DNA from: Podarcis bocagei
Lineage: Eukaryota
Assembly: GCA_964188305.1 (NCBI GenBank)
Contig: OZ076899.1
Length of the DNA stretch: 64,000 nucleotides
Reading direction: 5' to 3' (one strand)
The notes below the pieces were generated by a model. The model searched no databases. It was not told the DNA's origin and saw only the letters and a program-made list of their open reading frames with translations. Below, in pieces: positions 6,465 to 59,769 of the stretch (positions within the stretch are counted from its first letter, which is position 1; the number at the start of each line of letters is the position of its first letter). The translations under genes and the position numbers were made by a program.

Positions 6465-7053
6465 CAATGCTATTTTTCGGGGGGGGGATGCAGGGACGCA
6501 TATCCCTAAACATTTTGTGAATCTAATGGGAGAAGAAACTTTTTTTTAAAAAAAATAGTTTCTTCTTTAGAACGGTGAATTGTCAGTTCTGTTGCTACCC
6601 CCATTGGCAGCCTCATTTTTTGTCTCAGTGTTTTCTGAGTCTCAGACAGAAGCGAGTATTTAATGTCTGAAGTAGGAGTTGGAATCTAGCACTGTGATTG
6701 GTCAGTTTCATTGTTACCACCTCTGATGGCGGCTTCCTTTCCTTTCCCAGTGTTTCTTGAGTCTTAGATGAAAGCGAGCGTTTAATGTGTGAAGCAGTGT
6801 GGAATGTGGATGTGTGGTGTTTTACTGATGAAGGTTTGGCCTCATTGAGGGGGCAGTATTTCTTTCTTTCATTCAGTCATTTATTGAATTTATATACCAC
6901 CCCATACCTGGAAGTCTCAGGGTGGTTCACAAAAAAGATTTCAATATTTCAGTATGAGTATTTATTTTTCCAAATTTGAACTATAAAATGGTGATTTTCT
7001 TGAGTCTAAATGAGAGTACCCCTAAACACTTTATTTTAGAAAAAAAAGTACTG
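6465..7053. mobile_element. hAT-type non-autonomous element
   Basis: Imperfect TIR CAATGCTATTTTT / AAAAAAAGTACTG and perfect 8-bp TSD CATTAAAT (6457-6464 / 7054-7061). Confidence 0.8.
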
Positions 7054-7291
7054 CATTAAATGATTTAAAGAACTACAGGTGAAGCATTCAAACTATATCA
7101 TTAGAAGGTTCAATCCCTGGCATATCTAAGCAGAGCTGGGGGTGACTTCTGGCTGAAACCCTGAAGAGGTGCTGCCTGTCAGAGTAGGATGCAGCATGGT
7201 CACTTAAGAGTGTGATCTGCATAGTGGCTGATTCAATTTCAATAGATAGTCTTAAAGAAACCACCCCTGCTTCAGCTTTCTCTCTGCAGTA

Positions 7292-7713
7292 CAGTGGTAC
7301 CTCGGGTTAAGTACTTCTTCCTGCCTCTCCTTGCTGCCTGATGCCCTGGTCCATGCAACCCTTCTGTAGCAATCTGCACTCGCCTCAACACTACAGGAGG
7401 ACTTTTTGATCATCCAGTATCAAAAACCCAATTTATTTTCAAGAGAAGACCTACCTCTGATTAAAATAATGCAGTGGTACCTTGGGTTAAGTACTTACTT
7501 CGTTCCGGAGGTCCATACTTTACCTGAAACTGTTCTTAACCTGAAGCACCACTTTAGCTAACAGGGCCTCCTGCTGCTGCCATGCTGCCAGAGCACAATT
7601 TCTGTTCTCATCCTGAAGCAAAGTTCTTAACCCAAGGTAATATTTCTGGGTTAGCGGAGTCTGTAACCTGAAGCATCTGTAACGTGAAGCGTATGTAACC
7701 CAAGGTACCACTG
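7292..7713. mobile_element. Composite family-A MITE carrying captured DNA (Pack-TIR-like)
   Basis: Outer TIR 7292-7316, 158-bp cargo 7314-7471 (about 96% identical, inverted, to 58061-58218), then a full MITE 7472-7713. TA at 7290-7291 and 7714-7715. Confidence 0.88.
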
Positions 7714-8277
7714 TATAAGGTTAACATAGTTCCCAGTGGGGTAGAACATTTCCTTTGCATGCATAGAGTTCCAGGTCCAATCACTGGCAGACCTTGGGGT
7801 GTCAAATTTCAGAGGCTCCCTGTGCAACAACACCAACATTTGGCACACTCTGCTTCCCATGCCCCATTCTAAAGCATAGTTGGGCATCCTCTGCAGTGCC
7901 CCTAGGCTCAATGCCCAATATGACCAAACTGGTTGCACTCCCCTAAATCTCCCTCTGGTCCAATCCTTGGCAGCTTCAGGTAGGGCTGGGAGGCCAATGG
8001 CCTGACTCAGCATAAGGCAGCTTTCTTTGTTCCTAGGTGCTCTTCTGGGCTGCTCATGCATCCACTATGTCGGATCACTTTATGCATATTTTTCAAGTTT
8101 GCATTCCCCCCCCCCCTTATGGGCTACCAACATTTGTATCAATGTACATGTGCATCAGTTTAATCTCAGAACAAACACACCCAAAATGGAAGCTGGAGGA
8201 GAATGCACCCAGCTTCTATTTGCGGCTGCAGTCCTAGCAATGTCTACTCAGAATTAAGTCCTAATTAATTCAGTGGG

Positions 8278-8616
8278 TGGCGCTGTGGGTTAAACCACAG
8301 AGCCTAGGACTTGCCGATCAGAAGGTCGGCAGTTTGAATCCCTGCGACGGGGTGAGCTCCCGTTGCTCGGTCCCTGCTCCTGCCAACCTAGCAGTTCAAA
8401 AGCACATCAAAGTGCAAGCAGATAAATAGGTACCGCTCCGGCAGGAAGGTAAACGGCGTTTCCGTGCACTGCTCTGGTTCGTCAGAAGTGGCTTAGTCAT
8501 GCTGGCCACATGACCCGGAAGCTGTACATCGGCTCCCTTGACCAACAAAGCGAGATGAGCACCGCAACCCCAGAGTCAGCCACAACTGGACCTAATGGTC
8601 AGGGGTCCCTTTACCT
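8278..8616 (+). mobile_element. Sauria SINE (Squam1 type)
   Basis: tRNA-like head, characteristic ...GGCCACATGACCCGGAAGCTG... body, ACCTTT tail, 13-bp TSD TTAATTCAGTGGG (8265-8277 / 8617-8629). Inserted in a short palindromic GGCTGCA...TGCAGCC element (8224-8666). Confidence 0.9.
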
Positions 8617-9344
8617 TTAATTCAGTGGGGCTTCCTCACAGGTAAGTAGGATTAGGATTGCAGCCCAAGGCTTATGTGTGCCCCCTGATGGAGATGTCTG
8701 TAAGGTGTTCTGCCACTGAGCTGCCTCCCCAGCCCATGTTTTGCCTATAACTTTCTCTATGCATCAGATCTTAGGATCAAACGGTTGAATTTTCAGCTGC
8801 GGCCACTGATACTCTGTGAATATCAGCTTGGAGAGCTAAAATGATACTTGTTGGTGTTTTCTCTCTTTTATTTCTTTTTTTCAAAAAAGGCATTGCCGAA
8901 AGCGTTCCAGAATAGGAACCTATAATGCTCAAGGAAATTTCTCATTTTAGCAGGTGGCCGGAGGGCGAACACAATATCCTTTCAATATTGCAGAGTATCA
9001 GGCTCTCGCACACTCTGCGCTTACTCCCACATCCATCTCCCTTTGGCAGCTTAAACTCACTAAAGATGACTTAGCACATGAAGGATGCATGAGGATTGAA
9101 CCCTAATCAGATCATTACCACACTAAGGCTGGGAGAATAATTTCCAATCCAGAGCTGCCGCTTCTTTTGCCAACTCGTATTTATTTTAAAATAGATATTT
9201 ATTCATTCATTCCCTCTTTTGAGGAGGAGGGGAGATCTTGGTGGAGAGGAAGAGATGGCAGACAAAGAAGAAAGGTTGGCTTTATGTCCTGTCCATCTTA
9301 TCCATCTGTCTGTCTGTCTGTCTGTTTGTCTAGCTAGCTATCAA

Positions 9345-11795: not shown

Positions 11796-12155
11796 TAAAG
11801 GTAAAGGGACCCCTGACCATTAGGTCCAGTCGTGACCAACTCTGGGGTTGCGGCGCTCATCTCGCTTTATTGGTCGAGGGAACCGGCATACAGCTTCCGG
11901 GTCATGTGGCCAGCATGACTAAGCCGCTTCTGGCGAACCAGAGCAGCACACAGAAACGCCATTTACCTTCCCGCCGGAGTGGTACCTATTTATCTACTTG
12001 CACTTTAACGTGCTTTTGAACTGCTAGGTGGGCAGGAGCAGGGACCGAGCAATGGGAGCTCACCCCATCACGGGGATTTGAATCGCCAACCTTCTGATCA
12101 GCAAGTCCTAGGCTCTGTGGTTTAACCCACAGCTCCACCCGCTCCACCCCCCCCA
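11796..12155 (-). mobile_element. Sauria SINE
   Basis: Reverse complement of the 8278-8616 family, TAAAGGTAAAGG tail, probable TSD AAAAGCAGAC/AAAAACAGAC. Confidence 0.9.
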
Positions 12156-17267: not shown

Positions 17268-17560
17268 AGAAGAAGAAGAAGAAGAAGAAGAAGAAGAAGA
17301 AGAAGAAGAAGAAGAAGAAGAAGAAGAAGAAGAATTTGATATCCCGCTTTATCACTACCAGAAGGAGTCTCAAAGCGGCTAACATTCTCCTTTCCCTTCC
17401 TCCCCCACAACAAACACTCTGTGAGGTGAGTGGGGCTGAGAGACTTCAGAGAAGTGTGATTGGCCCAAGGTCACCCAGCAGCTGCATGTGGAGGAGCGGA
17501 GACGCGAACCCGGTTTCCCAGATTACGAGTCTACCGCTCTTAACCACTACACCACACTGG
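17268..17560 (-). mobile_element. CORE-SINE, Squam3 (Ther1/MIR-derived) type, with (CTT)n tail
   Basis: tRNA head (TGGTGTAGTGG A-box, GGTTCGCGTC B-box), CORE motif GGGTGACCTTGGGCCA, L2-like end, long (AAG)n at 17268-17333. Near-identical to 20644-20905 and 52360-52646. Confidence 0.88.
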
Positions 17561-18769: not shown

Positions 18770-19855
18770 GTCCTAAAAAAGATTGGACAACTGGGCCAAA
18801 ACTAATAAAATGAATTTCAATAGAGACATATGTAAGGTTCTACACAAGCAGGAAGAACCAGCTGCACAAATAGAAGATGGGGGATCTCCGGCTTGCCAGT
18901 AGTACATGTATAAAGGATCTAGGAGTCTTAGTAGATCACAAGCTTAACATGAGTATACAGTAAAAGTTAATGCTATTCTAGGCTGTATCAACCAAAGTGG
19001 AGTGTCATGATCAAGGGAAGTAATAAAGGTAAAGGGTAACCGTTAGGTCCAGTCATGACCATCTCTGGGGTTGTGGCGCTCATCTCGCTTTATTGGCTGA
19101 GGGAGCCGGCGTGCAGCTTCAGGTCATGTGGCCAGCATGACTAAGCCGCTTCTGGCGAACCAGAGCAGAGCACTGAAATGCCGTTTACCTTCCCGCTATT
19201 TATCTACTTGCAGTTTGACGTGCTTTCAAACTGCTAGGTTGGCAGGAGCAGGGACCGAGCAATGGGAGCTCACCCCATTGCGGGGATTCAAACCACCGAC
19301 CTTCTGATCAGCAAGTCCTAGGCTCTGTGGTTTAATCCACAGTGCCACCCGCATCCCCAATGGAAGTAATAGTCCCGCTCTATTCTACCTTAGTCAGACC
19401 ACACCTGGAGTACTGTGTCCAGTTCTGGGCACCACAGTTTAAGGAGGATGTTGACAGCCGGAACGTGTGCAGAGGAGGGTGACCAAGAGGAATGCCCTAT
19501 GAGGAACAGTTGAGGGAGTTGGATATGTTTGGTCTGGAAAAGAGGAGACTGAGAGGAGATATGAGAGCCATCTTCAAATATCTAAAGGGCTGTCACATGT
19601 AAGATGGAACAAGCTAGTTTCCCTCTGCTCTGGAGGATAGGACTAAACATCAAGAAGAACTTTCTGATGGTAAGAGCTGTTAGACAATGGAAAGGACTCT
19701 CTTGGGAGGTGGTGGACTCTCCTTCCTTGGGGATTTTTAAACAAAGGTTGGATGGCCATTTGTCATGGATGCTTTAGTTGAGATTCCTGCTTTGCAGGGG
19801 TTGGACTAGATTACTCAGGGGTCACTTCCATCTCTACAATTCTATGATTCTATGA
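18770..19855 (+). mobile_element. CR1 LINE 3' portion, interrupted by a Sauria SINE
   Basis: CR1 ORF2 motifs ([13 protein letters not shown] from TTAGTCAGACCACACCTGGAGTACTGTGTCCAGTTCTGG) and terminal (ATTCTATG)n repeat. 5' boundary approximate. Confidence 0.9.
19026..19357 (-). mobile_element. Sauria SINE nested in CR1
   Basis: Same family as 8278-8616, 14-bp TSD CAAGGGAAGTAATA / CAATGGAAGTAATA (19012-19025 / 19358-19371). Confidence 0.92.
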
Positions 19856-20645: not shown

Positions 20646-21285
20646 GAAGAAGAAGAAGAAGAAGAAGAGTTTGGATTTGATATCCCGCCTTTCACTCCCC
20701 TTCAGGAGTCTCAAAGCGGCTAACATTCTCCTTTCCCTTCCTCCCCCACAACAAACACTCTGTGAGGTGAGTGGGGCTGAGAGACTTCACAGAAGTGTGA
20801 CTGGCCCAAGGTCACCCAGCAGCTGCATGTGGAGGAGCGGAGACGCGAACCCGGTTTCCCAGATTACGTGACTACCGCTCTTAACCACTACACCACACTG
20901 GCTCCTATAATAATAATAATAATAATAATTTTTACCTGACCCTTCCCAGCCAGGACTGGGCTCAGGGCGGCTAACATCAAAGTATGATATATTAAAAACA
21001 TAAATTATAACTGGGTTAAAATATGCATAGAACTGCATCCCTTTAGCGAAAATAACGTAAAAGTGCATTATGTTAGGGAACATTATCTTGCAAAGTATGT
21101 ATTTTAGGCAAAATTGCATAGAAAATGTTTATATTAAGGCAAATTTGCACAAAAAATCTGTGCATTATCATCAGTTCTTAAAAAAAGAAATGCCAAACGG
21201 ATATGAAAATGTGGAAAACTAAAATTAAGATTTGTAATACCAAAAAACTGAAAGAAACCATAATTGACAGATTGACCTATTCCTA
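20454..21285. mobile_element. hAT-type MITE (TAGGGATG TIR family) interrupted by (AAT)n, a Squam3-type SINE and an L2 tail
   Basis: Ends TGGGGATG...TATTCCTA, imperfect 8-bp TSD GCTACAGA/GCTGAAGA, body homologous to 30656-31078. Confidence 0.6.
20644..20905 (-). mobile_element. CORE-SINE, Squam3 type
   Basis: Full-length, CpG-intact copy with (AAG)n tail, flanked on both sides by (AAT)n. Confidence 0.88.
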
Positions 21286-31078: not shown

Positions 31079-31786
31079 CAAGAGGCTAACAGCTGTTCCT
31101 GTGGAAGGCTGTTCTTTCTGCTGCTAGGTTTTTGGTGTGTGTTGGATCTATATGTTTTTATTGACTTAATTTTGCTGTTTTGAAATGCAAGTTAGACAGG
31201 AGAAGGGTGGGGGAGCCATAGCTTAAATAAATACATAAATAACCTATAGTTCTACCCTGTGGGATGGAGAGGGAGAGGGAGAGAGAAAGGCATACAAATT
31301 CAGCCAGTGAATTAGAATCTCTGCTTGGCTTTCATTGATCCATGGCATTGATGCAGACACCCAGACCTGCCCCTGGCTGGATGAATGATGCTAAAAATCA
31401 GCCAGTGTGATGGAATGGTAAACAGGGTTACAGAGCACCAGTAGGAGCTCCTTAGAGATGAGTTAGCTAGGGGAGAGGGAAGCGAGTTGTAGGATTGCGT
31501 GAGGGCAGCTGATGCTAAAGGAGAGAGTCGGGAAGATTGTCAGAGCACATGAGGAGTGCGGTGGCAGAGGGGGCTATTGGAGGGAGGCTTTCAGAAACAT
31601 CTGCTCCCAAGAGGATTCCAACCGTGTGGATCACCTGGATTTGCAGGAGATAGGTGTCAAAAACTGAGACAGAGATTGACACTTCCTGTCAGGGCGCTTG
31701 TCAGCTCAGCTGAGTGCAAACTCTCTGGCAATGAGAAGTAGTCCAGCTTAAGCTGTTTCTGATAGTCTTTCATTGTGTTTCTTTGT

Positions 31787-31790
<4 letters not shown>

Positions 31791-31850
<60 letters not shown>

Positions 31851-31862
31851 TGTATGTGTGTG
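31791..31862. repeat. (TC)n(TG)n compound microsatellite
   Basis: Direct observation. Confidence 0.95.
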
Positions 31863-32042
31863 TTATCTCAGGGATGTGGAACCACAGGCCTGTGAACCAA
31901 ATGTGGTCTTCCAGCCCCCTTTAAATGGCTTCCAGGACTCTGGCTCTGCTCTTCACCTTCCTTCGGTGTTTTCTTTGCCCACAGCTAGAATGTATCTCCG
32001 AACTGTGAAAATATCTCTTGTTTGCCTGGGTTTGGGCTGCAG

Positions 32043-32045
<3 letters not shown>

Positions 32046-32130
<85 letters not shown>
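32046..32130. repeat. (TC)n(TG)n compound microsatellite
   Basis: Direct observation. Confidence 0.95.
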
Positions 32131-32135
<5 letters not shown>

Positions 32136-32181
32136 AAACCTTTGGCTTTTGTGTTACTGGAATTTAGCCTACTGTGCACAA

Positions 32182-52359: not shown

Positions 52360-52360
<1 letters not shown>

Positions 52361-52646
52361 GGTGTAGTGGTTAAGAGCGGTAGTCTCGTAATCTGGGGAA
52401 CCGGGTTCGCTTCCCTGCTCCTCCACATGCAGCTGCCTGGTGACCTTGGGCCAGTCACACTTCTTTGAAGTCTCTCAGCCCCACTCACCTCACAGAGTGT
52501 TTGTTGTGGGGGAGGAAGGGAAAGGAGAATGTTAGCTGCTTTGAGACTCCTTAAAGGGAGTGAAAGGCGGGATATCAAATCCAAACTCCTCCTCCTCCTC
52601 CTCTTCTTCTTCTTCTTCTTCTTCTTCTTCTTCTTCTTCTTCTTCT
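52360..52646 (+). mobile_element. CORE-SINE, Squam3 type
   Basis: Near-identical to the 17.3-kb and 20.7-kb copies, (CCT)n(CTT)n tail, directly preceded by (ATT)n. Confidence 0.88.
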
Positions 52647-57452: not shown

Positions 57453-57834
57453 CTCTGTGTGTAATTGCTGCATTAAAAGAAATAATTCTCTTTCCTTCTC
57501 CGCAAAGTGCAAACACACTGTATGTTCACAATGGGGCCATAATGGCCTAATTCAATTATTGAGGGTCACGTTCCATGTACTGCTGTCTGATTTTCTTGTC
57601 AATCAATACAAACTTCATTTTAAAAAGCAAGCAAGTGTTGAGGGATATAGGGGGGTGGAGATGTTGTGGAAGGTTGAAGCCCAGCAGTTATGTAAGGTCT
57701 GCAGGACTTGTCTTTTGCTATTTGTAGCAAGTTCCCACACACACCCACTGAAGTTATGTGGAACACCTGGAAACAAGACAGTCTTGCTGCAAATGGTAAA
57801 CTGAAGACAAGTAAGAATCATAGATCCCACTGTA

Positions 57835-58060
57835 CAGTGGTACCTTGGGTTACATACGCTTCAGGTTACAGACTCCGCTAACCCAGAAATAGTACCTCAG
57901 GTTAAGAACTTTGCTTCAGGATGAGAACAGAAATCGTGATCCGGCAGCGCGGCAGCAGCAGGAGGCCCCATTAGCTAAAGTGGTGCTTCAGGTTAAGAAC
58001 AGTTTCAGGTTAAGAATGGACCTCCAGAATGAATTAAGTACTTAACCCAAGGTACCACTG
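57835..58060. mobile_element. Tc1/mariner MITE, family A (probable donor locus of the DNA captured at 7314-7471)
   Basis: TIR CAGTGGTACCTTGGGTTA...TAACCCAAGGTACCACTG, TA TSD. Confidence 0.9.
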
Positions 58061-59769
58061 TATTATTTTAATCAGAAGTAGGTCTTCTCTTGAAAATAAA
58101 TTGGGTTTATGATACTGGATGATCAAAAAGTCCTCCTGTAGTGTTGAGGCGACTGCAGATTGCTACAGAAGGGTTGCATGGGCCAGGGCATCAGGCAGCA
58201 AGGAGAGGCAGGACGAAGAGGCAGCCATCAGATAAGATAACCCAACAAAAAGTATACCTAGCCTACAGCTGCATCTAACTAGGAGAAGGTACCATCCCTG
58301 AAGCAACAACTCACATATAACAGCTGTTGCGTGGAGGCACTGATCCTGTGCGGTGCAGGGTGTTGTTTTGCAAATGGATTTCCCAAGAGGAAAGCCACTT
58401 ATGAATCAGCACCCTGCGATACTGAAACATTCATGCAACAGCTGTTTAATCCTGTAGAGCCCAGCGGCTTCCCAGCAGAGGAGCCACTTGCAAAGGAGCA
58501 CCCCACAGAATTCATCCCTCTGCTCTCAAATGGGAAGCAGGGAAGGCGACACAGCATCGCCTTCCCATGCTCCCTTGTGGCCACATGTTTCATTAGGTTT
58601 TGCTTTTTAAAAATAAATAAATAACTAATTAAACTTTAGCTCCACTAATTCAGGACTGGTTCCAGGGGAGGTGGGTCCTCAGGCTGGCTCAGTGTGGATT
58701 GGCCTAATTGCCTCCCTCCTGGATCAGGGCCAAGGGGCAGATTGGGTGGAGGCTATGTGCTGCCCTGCAGGGAAGGTGTAAAGCTGCCTTATCTTGAGTC
58801 TGACCATGGATCTATCTGGCTCCAAACTGTCTCCTCTGACTGGTGCTCCGAACTTCCAGACAAAATCGCTTTCCCAACTTCAATTCCTGACATATTTTAT
58901 TTTGGCTGAACATGCCAGACTTGAACTTGGAGCCTTCTCTGTGTGGAACATGTGCTCTGTACCACAAAGCACCATGACCTCCTCAGATGGAACACAGACC
59001 GCTTGAGGAGGTCCTTTATACCAACCTTTATCAACCTTGTTCTCCATCAGATGTTTTGGACCACGACTTCCATCAGCCCCAGTCAGCACAGCTGGCGGTC
59101 CGAAACATCTGATGGAGAACAAGGTTGGCAATTTCCTGCCCCATGGTAGAACAGCTCATTTTCCATTCCCGTTCCCTGCCTGAATACAGGCCCTGAATCA
59201 AGAGGAAGGTTCAGGCATCTTGAAATTGTTTCAGAACAAGGTTAGCCCCCACCCCACATCCTCATATGGAAACCAGCTAAGTGCAAAGATCAATGTATTC
59301 ACCGCTGAACATTTCCTGGAGAAACATTGCATCCTCCCTCATTTACTTGATTATCTTGAGGGTGAATCAATCAAAGGAATGGCAATGCATGTTGCACAGG
59401 CTACAACCCTGTGGGTGTCCATTAGAGGGCTATCTGCCCAGTGATAATGGAACTGCTGATTAACAAGCATGCAGCGCTGTGGCTTGGGCATTTATTTGTT
59501 TCAAGGAGAAGAACTGCTGCTCGATGACAGTCCAGCATTTAGCAGCTGGTTTGTTAGCATCCTGCTGTCCTGAATGCTTCACATAACTCACTCAGATGGT
59601 GCCGACATTGTTGGTCCATCCATCCATCTCCTGACTTTCTTGCAAAAGGCAACGGTCTGGGAATTTGGTTGAGAACGTGATCTAATTTGGGAGACAGAGA
59701 GAGAAAGTTTCCTTGCATTTGTTACTGAGGCCTGGAACTGCTACAGCCACTGTGATGCTCTCCAGAAGT

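Follow-up and report, generated by a model that had tools for sequence, protein, structure and literature searches.

The window analysed here is a stretch of 64,000 nucleotides of Podarcis bocagei DNA, and at 7.3 kb it contains a composite element in the order TA, a 25-nt terminus, ∼153 nt of other DNA, TG, a complete 242-nt MITE and TA. The left TA target-site duplication (7290-7291), up to which a contig of organism D (record 12) matches exactly, is followed by an outer MITE terminus (7292-7316, plus strand; CAGTGGTACCTCGGGTTAAGTACTT) of the 'AAGTACTT' end type, with its outer tip towards the TA and its inner side joined to the cargo. This 25-nt family terminus occurs at six sites in the 64-kb window, compared with 0 expected, and the copy at 7292-7316 has 0 mismatches to the terminus pattern; the extra terminus with its own TA that had been reported in a preliminary description of this DNA is present as described. 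The cargo proper (7317-7469, minus strand) is a copy of host DNA at 58063-58215, or 58063-58218 when the microhomology at the junction is included, without an indel and at single-copy depth. It is followed by TG (7470-7471), which according to the alignment and the family reads was once the TA duplication of the donor MITE (58061-58062) and was carried along with the cargo. The full MITE (7472-7713, plus strand; raw depth 54,000-82,000) is inverted relative to the copy at 58 kb and starts with the same terminus as the outer one, and the right TA target-site duplication (7714-7715) closes the element. Both ends of the composite are good termini with TA duplications, in agreement with the earlier claim of intact outer TIRs.

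A self-BLASTN of the 64-kb window aligned 7314-7715 with the reverse complement of 57833-58218 (90.8% over 402 columns, E 1e-164). In a repeat search of the window the ungapped match between the two loci was 370 nt at 94%. The matching block comprises the full MITE, the MITE's TA and 156 bases of flank; at 7.3 kb it is preceded by the extra terminus, and TA lies at both outer sides. Over the cargo segment, 152 of the 158 positions of 7314-7471 are identical to 58218-58061 with no indel, and the reverse-complement relation claimed before, with about six mismatches, proved to be correct. The six substitutions lie at 7318, 7350, 7379, 7423, 7455 and 7471, and that at 7471, where 97% of family reads have A, converts the carried-over donor TA into TG. 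No further match to the cargo was found by self-BLASTN anywhere in the window, the whole window gave 0 Rfam matches to structured RNAs at the gathering score, and the cargo has no evident function.

The order at 58 kb is TA, a 226-nt MITE in the opposite orientation, TA and host DNA. The TA at the far end of this donor, or sister, MITE (57833-57834) is where the homology to 7.3 kb stops. The donor MITE itself (57835-58060, plus strand) aligns without one 15-16-nt tandem unit that is present in the other three copies in the window. On the cargo side it is followed by its TA target-site duplication (58061-58062) and then by the parental host DNA of the cargo (58063-58218, plus strand), to which contigs of three organisms align no further than 7314, beyond which they diverge. 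The alignment runs from MITE across TA into flank, and the source of the cargo does lie directly beside the MITE. After 58218 the window sequence has neither a MITE terminus nor a TA, and from 58219 onward it is unrelated to the terminus, as expected from the earlier statement that the homology at 58 kb runs into unrelated sequence. The left flank of the 58-kb MITE (CCACTG) mimics the tip of the MITE itself, forming a 14-nt palindrome (CCACTGTACAGTGG) at 57827-57840 that may reflect chance or target preference. Consequently, an empty 58-kb site aligns six letters into the element.

The homology between the two loci is a single uninterrupted block, limited by the MITE tip and TA on one side and by a 3-nt microhomology on the other. 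Homology to the terminus extends to 7316 and homology to the 58-kb flank begins at 7314, which places a CTT/AAG overlap (7314-7316) at the non-homologous junction between terminus and donor flank. The AAG microhomology in the preliminary description is this overlap, and the chance of at least 3 nt is ∼0.05. Among the short-read contigs listed, none bridges 7316/7317, because the contigs stop inside the high-copy terminus. The outer terminus came from another source: at the parent locus organisms A, C and D have no terminus, and the window sequence has no TA at this point either. The outer terminus keeps a CpG (CCTCGGG); the inner and donor termini both read CCTTGGG. This difference, at one site, fits a separate origin of the outer terminus.

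Besides the MITEs at 7.3 kb and 58 kb, the window contains copies at 1176-1403 and 1450-1695. All four copies, like the composite, have TA on either side, and their ends form inverted repeats over 18 nt, with 17 of 18 positions matching. From its TA duplication and short TIRs, the MITE is a candidate member of the Tc1/mariner superfamily (Tigger-like); no autonomous partner with a DDE (pogo-type) transposase and matching termini was found in the 64-kb window. The copies at 1176-1403 and 1450-1695 are in the same orientation, 46 nt apart, each with its own TA duplication, and that at 1176-1403 lacks a 17-nt internal stretch. The loose ends beside MITE tips are strongly A/T-rich, which suggests that the MITE inserts into AT-rich DNA. 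In a related lizard (organism B) the raw-read depth implies roughly 20,000-60,000 copies of the family.

We also compared the bodies of the MITE copies. The 7.3-kb and 58-kb MITEs differ by an indel of 15-16 nt at 7669-7684, which corresponds to the extra internal unit of ∼17 bp in the preliminary description. Both 1176-1403 and 1450-1695 carry this unit; since it is found in all three other window copies, it was the 58-kb copy that lost it. Many family reads end at the indel point, which indicates that one-unit forms are common. The use of the body difference as a case against a plain duplication proved weak. Ten of the 15 substitutions between the two bodies are CpG transitions, and with CpG decay and the loss of one tandem unit in the donor, this argument adds nothing either way. 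Non-CpG divergence was 2.2% for the MITE and 3.8% for the cargo (p = 0.37), and cargo and MITE also did not differ significantly when all substitutions were counted (p = 0.26). A gap in divergence between cargo and MITE as a sign of two events was dropped on these values. The four window copies were compared by thirds, with CpG transitions in and out. In the cargo-proximal third the 7.3-kb/58-kb pair differs by 5.6%, compared with 6.7-8.3% among unrelated copies, so that the pair is no closer, and the distal 57 nt are identical between the two. A chimeric MITE body as evidence for a switch point was abandoned, since the family is too uniform for a usable signal in the comparison by thirds.

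Contigs from three sets and reads from one raw whole-genome run of the related organisms A-D were mapped on 6714-8213 at 80% likeness. The contig sets were X1 (organism A), X7 (C) and X13 (D), and the raw run was X24 (B), in which about 1.9 billion letters were read. In the raw run the five MITE bins had depths of 54,000-82,000, the cargo core bin (7364-7413) a depth of 1.36 and the least repeated flanking bins 1.6-4.8. The two outer cargo bins were raised solely by spill-over from the terminus positions 7314-7316 and from the AT-rich flanks of other copies. Each contig set had one contig over 7379 and at least 125 to 128 over MITE positions. The cargo is present at about one copy-equivalent (about one to two copies) in the genome. 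The core depth and the one contig per assembly show that it is not a high-copy TE constituent; a cargo forming a high-copy part of a longer TE, the alternative named in the preliminary description, is not what the depths (1.36 versus 54,000-82,000) describe. At 6860-7060 and 7910-8060 the flanks of the 7.3-kb locus contain DNA of moderate to high repetition, which reaches a raw depth of ∼2,800. The repeats flanking the locus include tRNA-like SINE motifs (GGTTCAATCCCTGGCAT), also found at 2429, 30434, 45348, 48637 and 50712.

Organism D was used to decide which locus is the parent. Its contig record 12 (X13, 815 nt) aligns in two parts, 7017-7291 and 7763-8212, which are separated by 8 other letters. 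The joining of 7291 to 7763 means that neither MITE nor cargo is present at the 7.3-kb site of organism D. The left break of this contig falls exactly at the TA; the gap of 471 nt with 8 other letters is not a clean 424-nt empty site. Organism D lacks ∼39-47 nt just right of the insertion site (7716-7762), a stretch flanked by the near-repeats CATAGTTCCCAG and CATAGAGTTCCAG whose absence may be an unrelated slippage deletion, and it has an 18-nt insertion behind 7237.

The 58-kb locus in organisms A, C and D was viewed through contigs overlapping the cargo. In organism D, contig record 13 (2,138 nt) starts its match at 7314, the onset of homology to the 58-kb flank, and matches 7314-7477 only; it diverges on both sides, continues 145 nt past 7477 and contains no MITE. 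A stop at 7477 agrees exactly with an empty 58-kb site: in this direction the donor's left flank reads CAGTGG, six MITE-like letters. At 7350, organism D has only the base of the 58-kb type, and organisms A (X1) and C (X7) have both types at similar depth. The contigs of A and C that flank the 7.3-kb site end within MITE termini on both sides (records 1, 7, 17 and 22). In the A and C runs, the contig with the 7.3-kb-specific T at 7350 appears to end its alignment at 7378. This stop would fit G, and not the C of the window, at 7379 in organisms A and C, and the C at 7379 could be an error or a variant restricted to the individual that was assembled.

These results identify the 58-kb flank as ancestral host DNA and the 7.3-kb copy as derived. 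Both parts of the earlier prediction, that the donor flank should be ancestral at 58 kb and absent at 7.3 kb, are borne out by the outgroup D. The sequence of events is therefore host DNA at 58 kb, MITE insertion there and then the appearance of the composite at 7.3 kb, and both the 58-kb MITE insertion and the 7.3-kb composite arose in the interval between the divergence of D and that of A and C from each other. Since both insertions are younger than the split from D, the MITE family was active recently. Non-CpG divergence is ∼3% between the 7.3-kb and 58-kb copies and ∼4-7% between the window and the D flanks, figures that fit the proposed order of events. No plain MITE was seen at 7.3 kb: the site is empty in D and occupied in A and C, and B has too few reads.

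The data show how the locus is built and joined, that its cargo is low in copy number, and that 58 kb is the parent and 7.3 kb the derived copy. That a plain MITE was once present at 7.3 kb, and what kind of break it suffered, we infer. We believe that the composite is probably a single-copy Pack-TIR produced by templated break repair, or by replication switching, between two cis-linked sister MITEs. An ordinary MITE already present at 7.3 kb would have suffered a break or excision, and its repair would have used as template a sister MITE of this family, which lies inverted on the same chromosome at a distance of 50 kb. The new strand would have paired by MITE homology, left the sister at its 'AAGTACTT' end, crossed the TA and copied 156 bases of host flank. 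It would then have been released and joined at the 3-base CTT/AAG overlap to the other broken end, which had retained a 25-base MITE terminus. Fork stalling followed by a microhomology jump and a return via MITE homology could give the same product. In either case the product would consist of an outer terminus, host DNA, the old TA and a full MITE. Gap repair or template switching with a return by microhomology, as first proposed for this locus, is the best-fitting mechanism, and the depth and outgroup tests are favorable to it. A random template would lie within 51 kb in cis in ∼7 of 100,000 cases, given about 2-6 x 10^4 genomic copies. Such cis bias, together with microhomology at the junction, has been reported as the hallmark of animal gap filling (PMC8277862). 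There is no sign of movement of the composite, and no further cargo copies with different TSDs were found (core depth 1.36 and one contig per assembly).

We considered whether the composite could have been built at another MITE near 58 kb and then excised and pasted into the TA at 7.3 kb, by FoSTeST or a later hop. This explanation implies one move of the composite as a unit. In its favor, good termini with TA duplications form the two outer ends, organism D is without the element here, and a plain-MITE stage was not observed. The family was also active after the split from D, in which the 58-kb insertion is absent too, and the FoSTeST model is published (Tan et al. 2021). However, an extra step with no testable trace is required, and with the cargo at about one to two copies there is no surviving source composite. 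In addition, the transposed multicopy Pack-TIRs of Tan et al. are far from their parents, and the cis-proximal ones are single-copy gap fillings. That the composite reached 7.3 kb by transposition as a unit is a possibility, and we regard this particular route as unlikely.

Alternative transposition with re-replication, like that giving rise to the 'Composite Insertions' of maize Ac/fAc, is also improbable as the origin of the lizard element. The far tip of the 58-kb MITE and the 'AAGTACTT' tip of a second copy would be inserted together at 7.3 kb in S phase. Re-replication would extend for 25 nt from one tip and through the whole MITE and 158 nt of flank from the other, and would then abort, with both ends joined at CTT. 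This scheme predicts the same anatomy, namely outer tips with a TSD, TE and donor flank inside and a microhomology of 3-4 nt (PMC4270019), and it makes a prior MITE at 7.3 kb unnecessary. The copy at 1450-1695 is in the same orientation, with its 'AAGTACTT' tip facing the donor. The far tip and body fit the 58-kb copy, and the outer terminus differs at one CpG site. However, the process is documented for maize hAT elements and not for TA-inserting ones, large duplications or deletions are usual and none is visible between 1.7 and 58 kb, and more coincidences are needed than for a repair event.

The polarity might also be reversed, with 7.3 kb as the original and 58 kb as the derived copy, or the assembler might have misplaced a copy of the 58-kb flank. 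The short-read contigs listed do not bridge 7316/7317, and the gap of organism D at 7.3 kb exceeds the size of the element and could be a deletion. However, the independent A and C runs have both the T specific to 7.3 kb and the 58-kb base at 7350, and D lacks this T; the presence of the T in two independent runs argues against an assembly artefact. To the left and right of the site, the flanking contigs of A and C break off within MITE termini, and under a reversed polarity the copying would have halted by chance exactly at the edge of the terminus fragment, which would be an odd coincidence. Both explanations are very improbable.

In end-bypass transduction, the transposase would have used a terminus-like sequence 158 nt past the end of the 58-kb MITE and moved the MITE together with its flank. 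The parent directly adjoins a TE of the same family, the donor TA was carried along, and Tan et al. expected this process for TE-linked parents. However, a perfect 25-nt terminus forms the outer end of the 7.3-kb element and nothing similar is found past 58218: a global alignment of both loci has 18 mismatches over 7291-7316, and the contigs of A, C and D also depart at 7314 (records 2, 18 and 13). We therefore rejected end bypass, for which hardly any probability remains, as the cargo sequence at the parent locus is not bordered by a terminus in the window or in organisms A, C and D. Finally, an internal direct repeat of the terminus could collapse to a short form and a one-sided loss of 25 nt would give a similar picture, but the proposal that the 158 bases are a regular part of a ∼420-nt TE family, truncated at 58 kb, has the least credibility of all and was ruled out by read depth and contig counts. 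At 80% likeness the cargo core has a depth of 1.36 and the MITE one of >54,000, a single contig in each assembly covers the cargo, and in D the cargo lies within a 2.1-kb contig without a MITE.

How TIR transposons acquire host DNA was for a long time unclear. A survey of 100 animal genomes (Tan et al. 2021, Nat Commun 12:4280, PMC8277862) identified 370 Pack-TIRs, 115 of them on TcMariner. They are mostly single copy and cis-proximal with microhomology at the breakpoints, and were attributed to gap filling. The lizard composite has the structure required of a Pack-TIR, 100-5000 bp of non-TE DNA between two parts of the same TIR that each include at least 10 bp of its terminal sequence: here 153-156 nt lie between the 25-nt terminal fragment 7292-7316 and the full 242-nt copy 7472-7713. 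Its parent is unique, at least 90% identical and within the length ratio of 80-120%. The core depth of 1.36 and the one contig per assembly place it outside the mobilized, multicopy class. The claim of a Pack-TIR capture is thus supported by the structure and the unique parent, with the qualification that this parent has a TE within 100 bp. The published pipeline dropped parents with a TE within 100 bp, as a control against segmental duplication, and its authors noted the possible loss of end-bypass cases; the lizard parent, which abuts the sister MITE, would not have passed. This distance is a filter of the pipeline and not a property of the mechanism, and the extra terminus and the TSDs rule out a plain segmental duplication at this locus.

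The lizard element resembles the single-copy Pack-TIRs of Tan et al. in its unique cis-proximal parent with >90% identity, its microhomology and its single-copy product, and the TcMariner superfamily is among their commonest carriers. It differs in that its parent directly adjoins a sister copy, which was copied too together with its TA; consequently, long TE homology conceals one of the junctions, and the terminus is present twice in the product. Because TE-adjacent parents were discarded, the sub-class seen here was left unsurveyed in that study (PMC8277862). The breakpoint in the lizard is 25 nt from the tip, while theirs lean to the interior. End bypass, or flank transduction, by TIR elements has been described for P elements (cited in PMC8277862). 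It is similar in that the cargo is the immediate flank of a TE and is carried with the target-site duplication of that copy; in contrast, the outer end in the lizard is a true family terminus that is missing at the parent, and no downstream pseudo-end is available for the step that end bypass requires. The Composite Insertions of maize Ac/fAc (Zhang et al. 2014, eLife 3:e03724, PMC4270019) share outer TE termini with a TSD, TE and donor flank inside and 3-4 nt of microhomology. They are 14-23 kb in length, compared with 0.4 kb in the lizard, and superfamily and kingdom differ; no accompanying duplication or deletion is seen in the lizard case, and its outer terminus is unlike that of the donor at a CpG. 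A literature search on the terminus gave a single match, the Tigger-like MITE (pogo group, Tc1/mariner superfamily) MITE_109 of the bug Rhodnius prolixus (PMC4678618). Both share the TA duplication and the terminus start TA-CAGTGGTACCTCGG, with the first 16 letters identical. The resemblance is at the terminus only, and the rest of the lizard element is unrelated as far as seen. Nothing relevant was found in the literature on Podarcis MITEs.

Repair-mediated loading of host DNA into transposons is not a new mechanism, and the phenomenon is already described in animals as single-copy Pack-TIRs (PMC8277862); the lizard composite is a natural example of it. The locus offers donor, recipient and both junctions, together with an outgroup in which both sites are empty. 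A parent linked to a TE need not mean end bypass, as an ectopic sister copy can template the repair, with read-through into its flank. The locus is useful as a worked example and as a search pattern for a genome-wide count. Whether read-through from sister copies in cis is a regular output of this MITE family, with its tens of thousands of copies, is rather doubtful at present. If it were, composites of this kind would be a natural and datable record of the reach of the germline homology search along a vertebrate chromosome, and would represent a class of TE-mediated duplication that published surveys filtered out.

Several other repeats were observed in the window. Three copies of a ∼350-nt repeat family, ∼90% alike and one of them inverted, are located at 8272-8619, 11796-12143 and 19039-19352. 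A pair of repeats at 17363-17560 and 20704-20901 is 98% alike and has a third, inverted copy at 52360-52644; each of these three adjoins an (AAG)n tract. At 31772-32142 there are two (CT)n(GT)n compound microsatellites, 255 nt apart and with similar flanks (AGGTCTCTCT...), which suggests either a small local duplication or a repeat-borne microsatellite.
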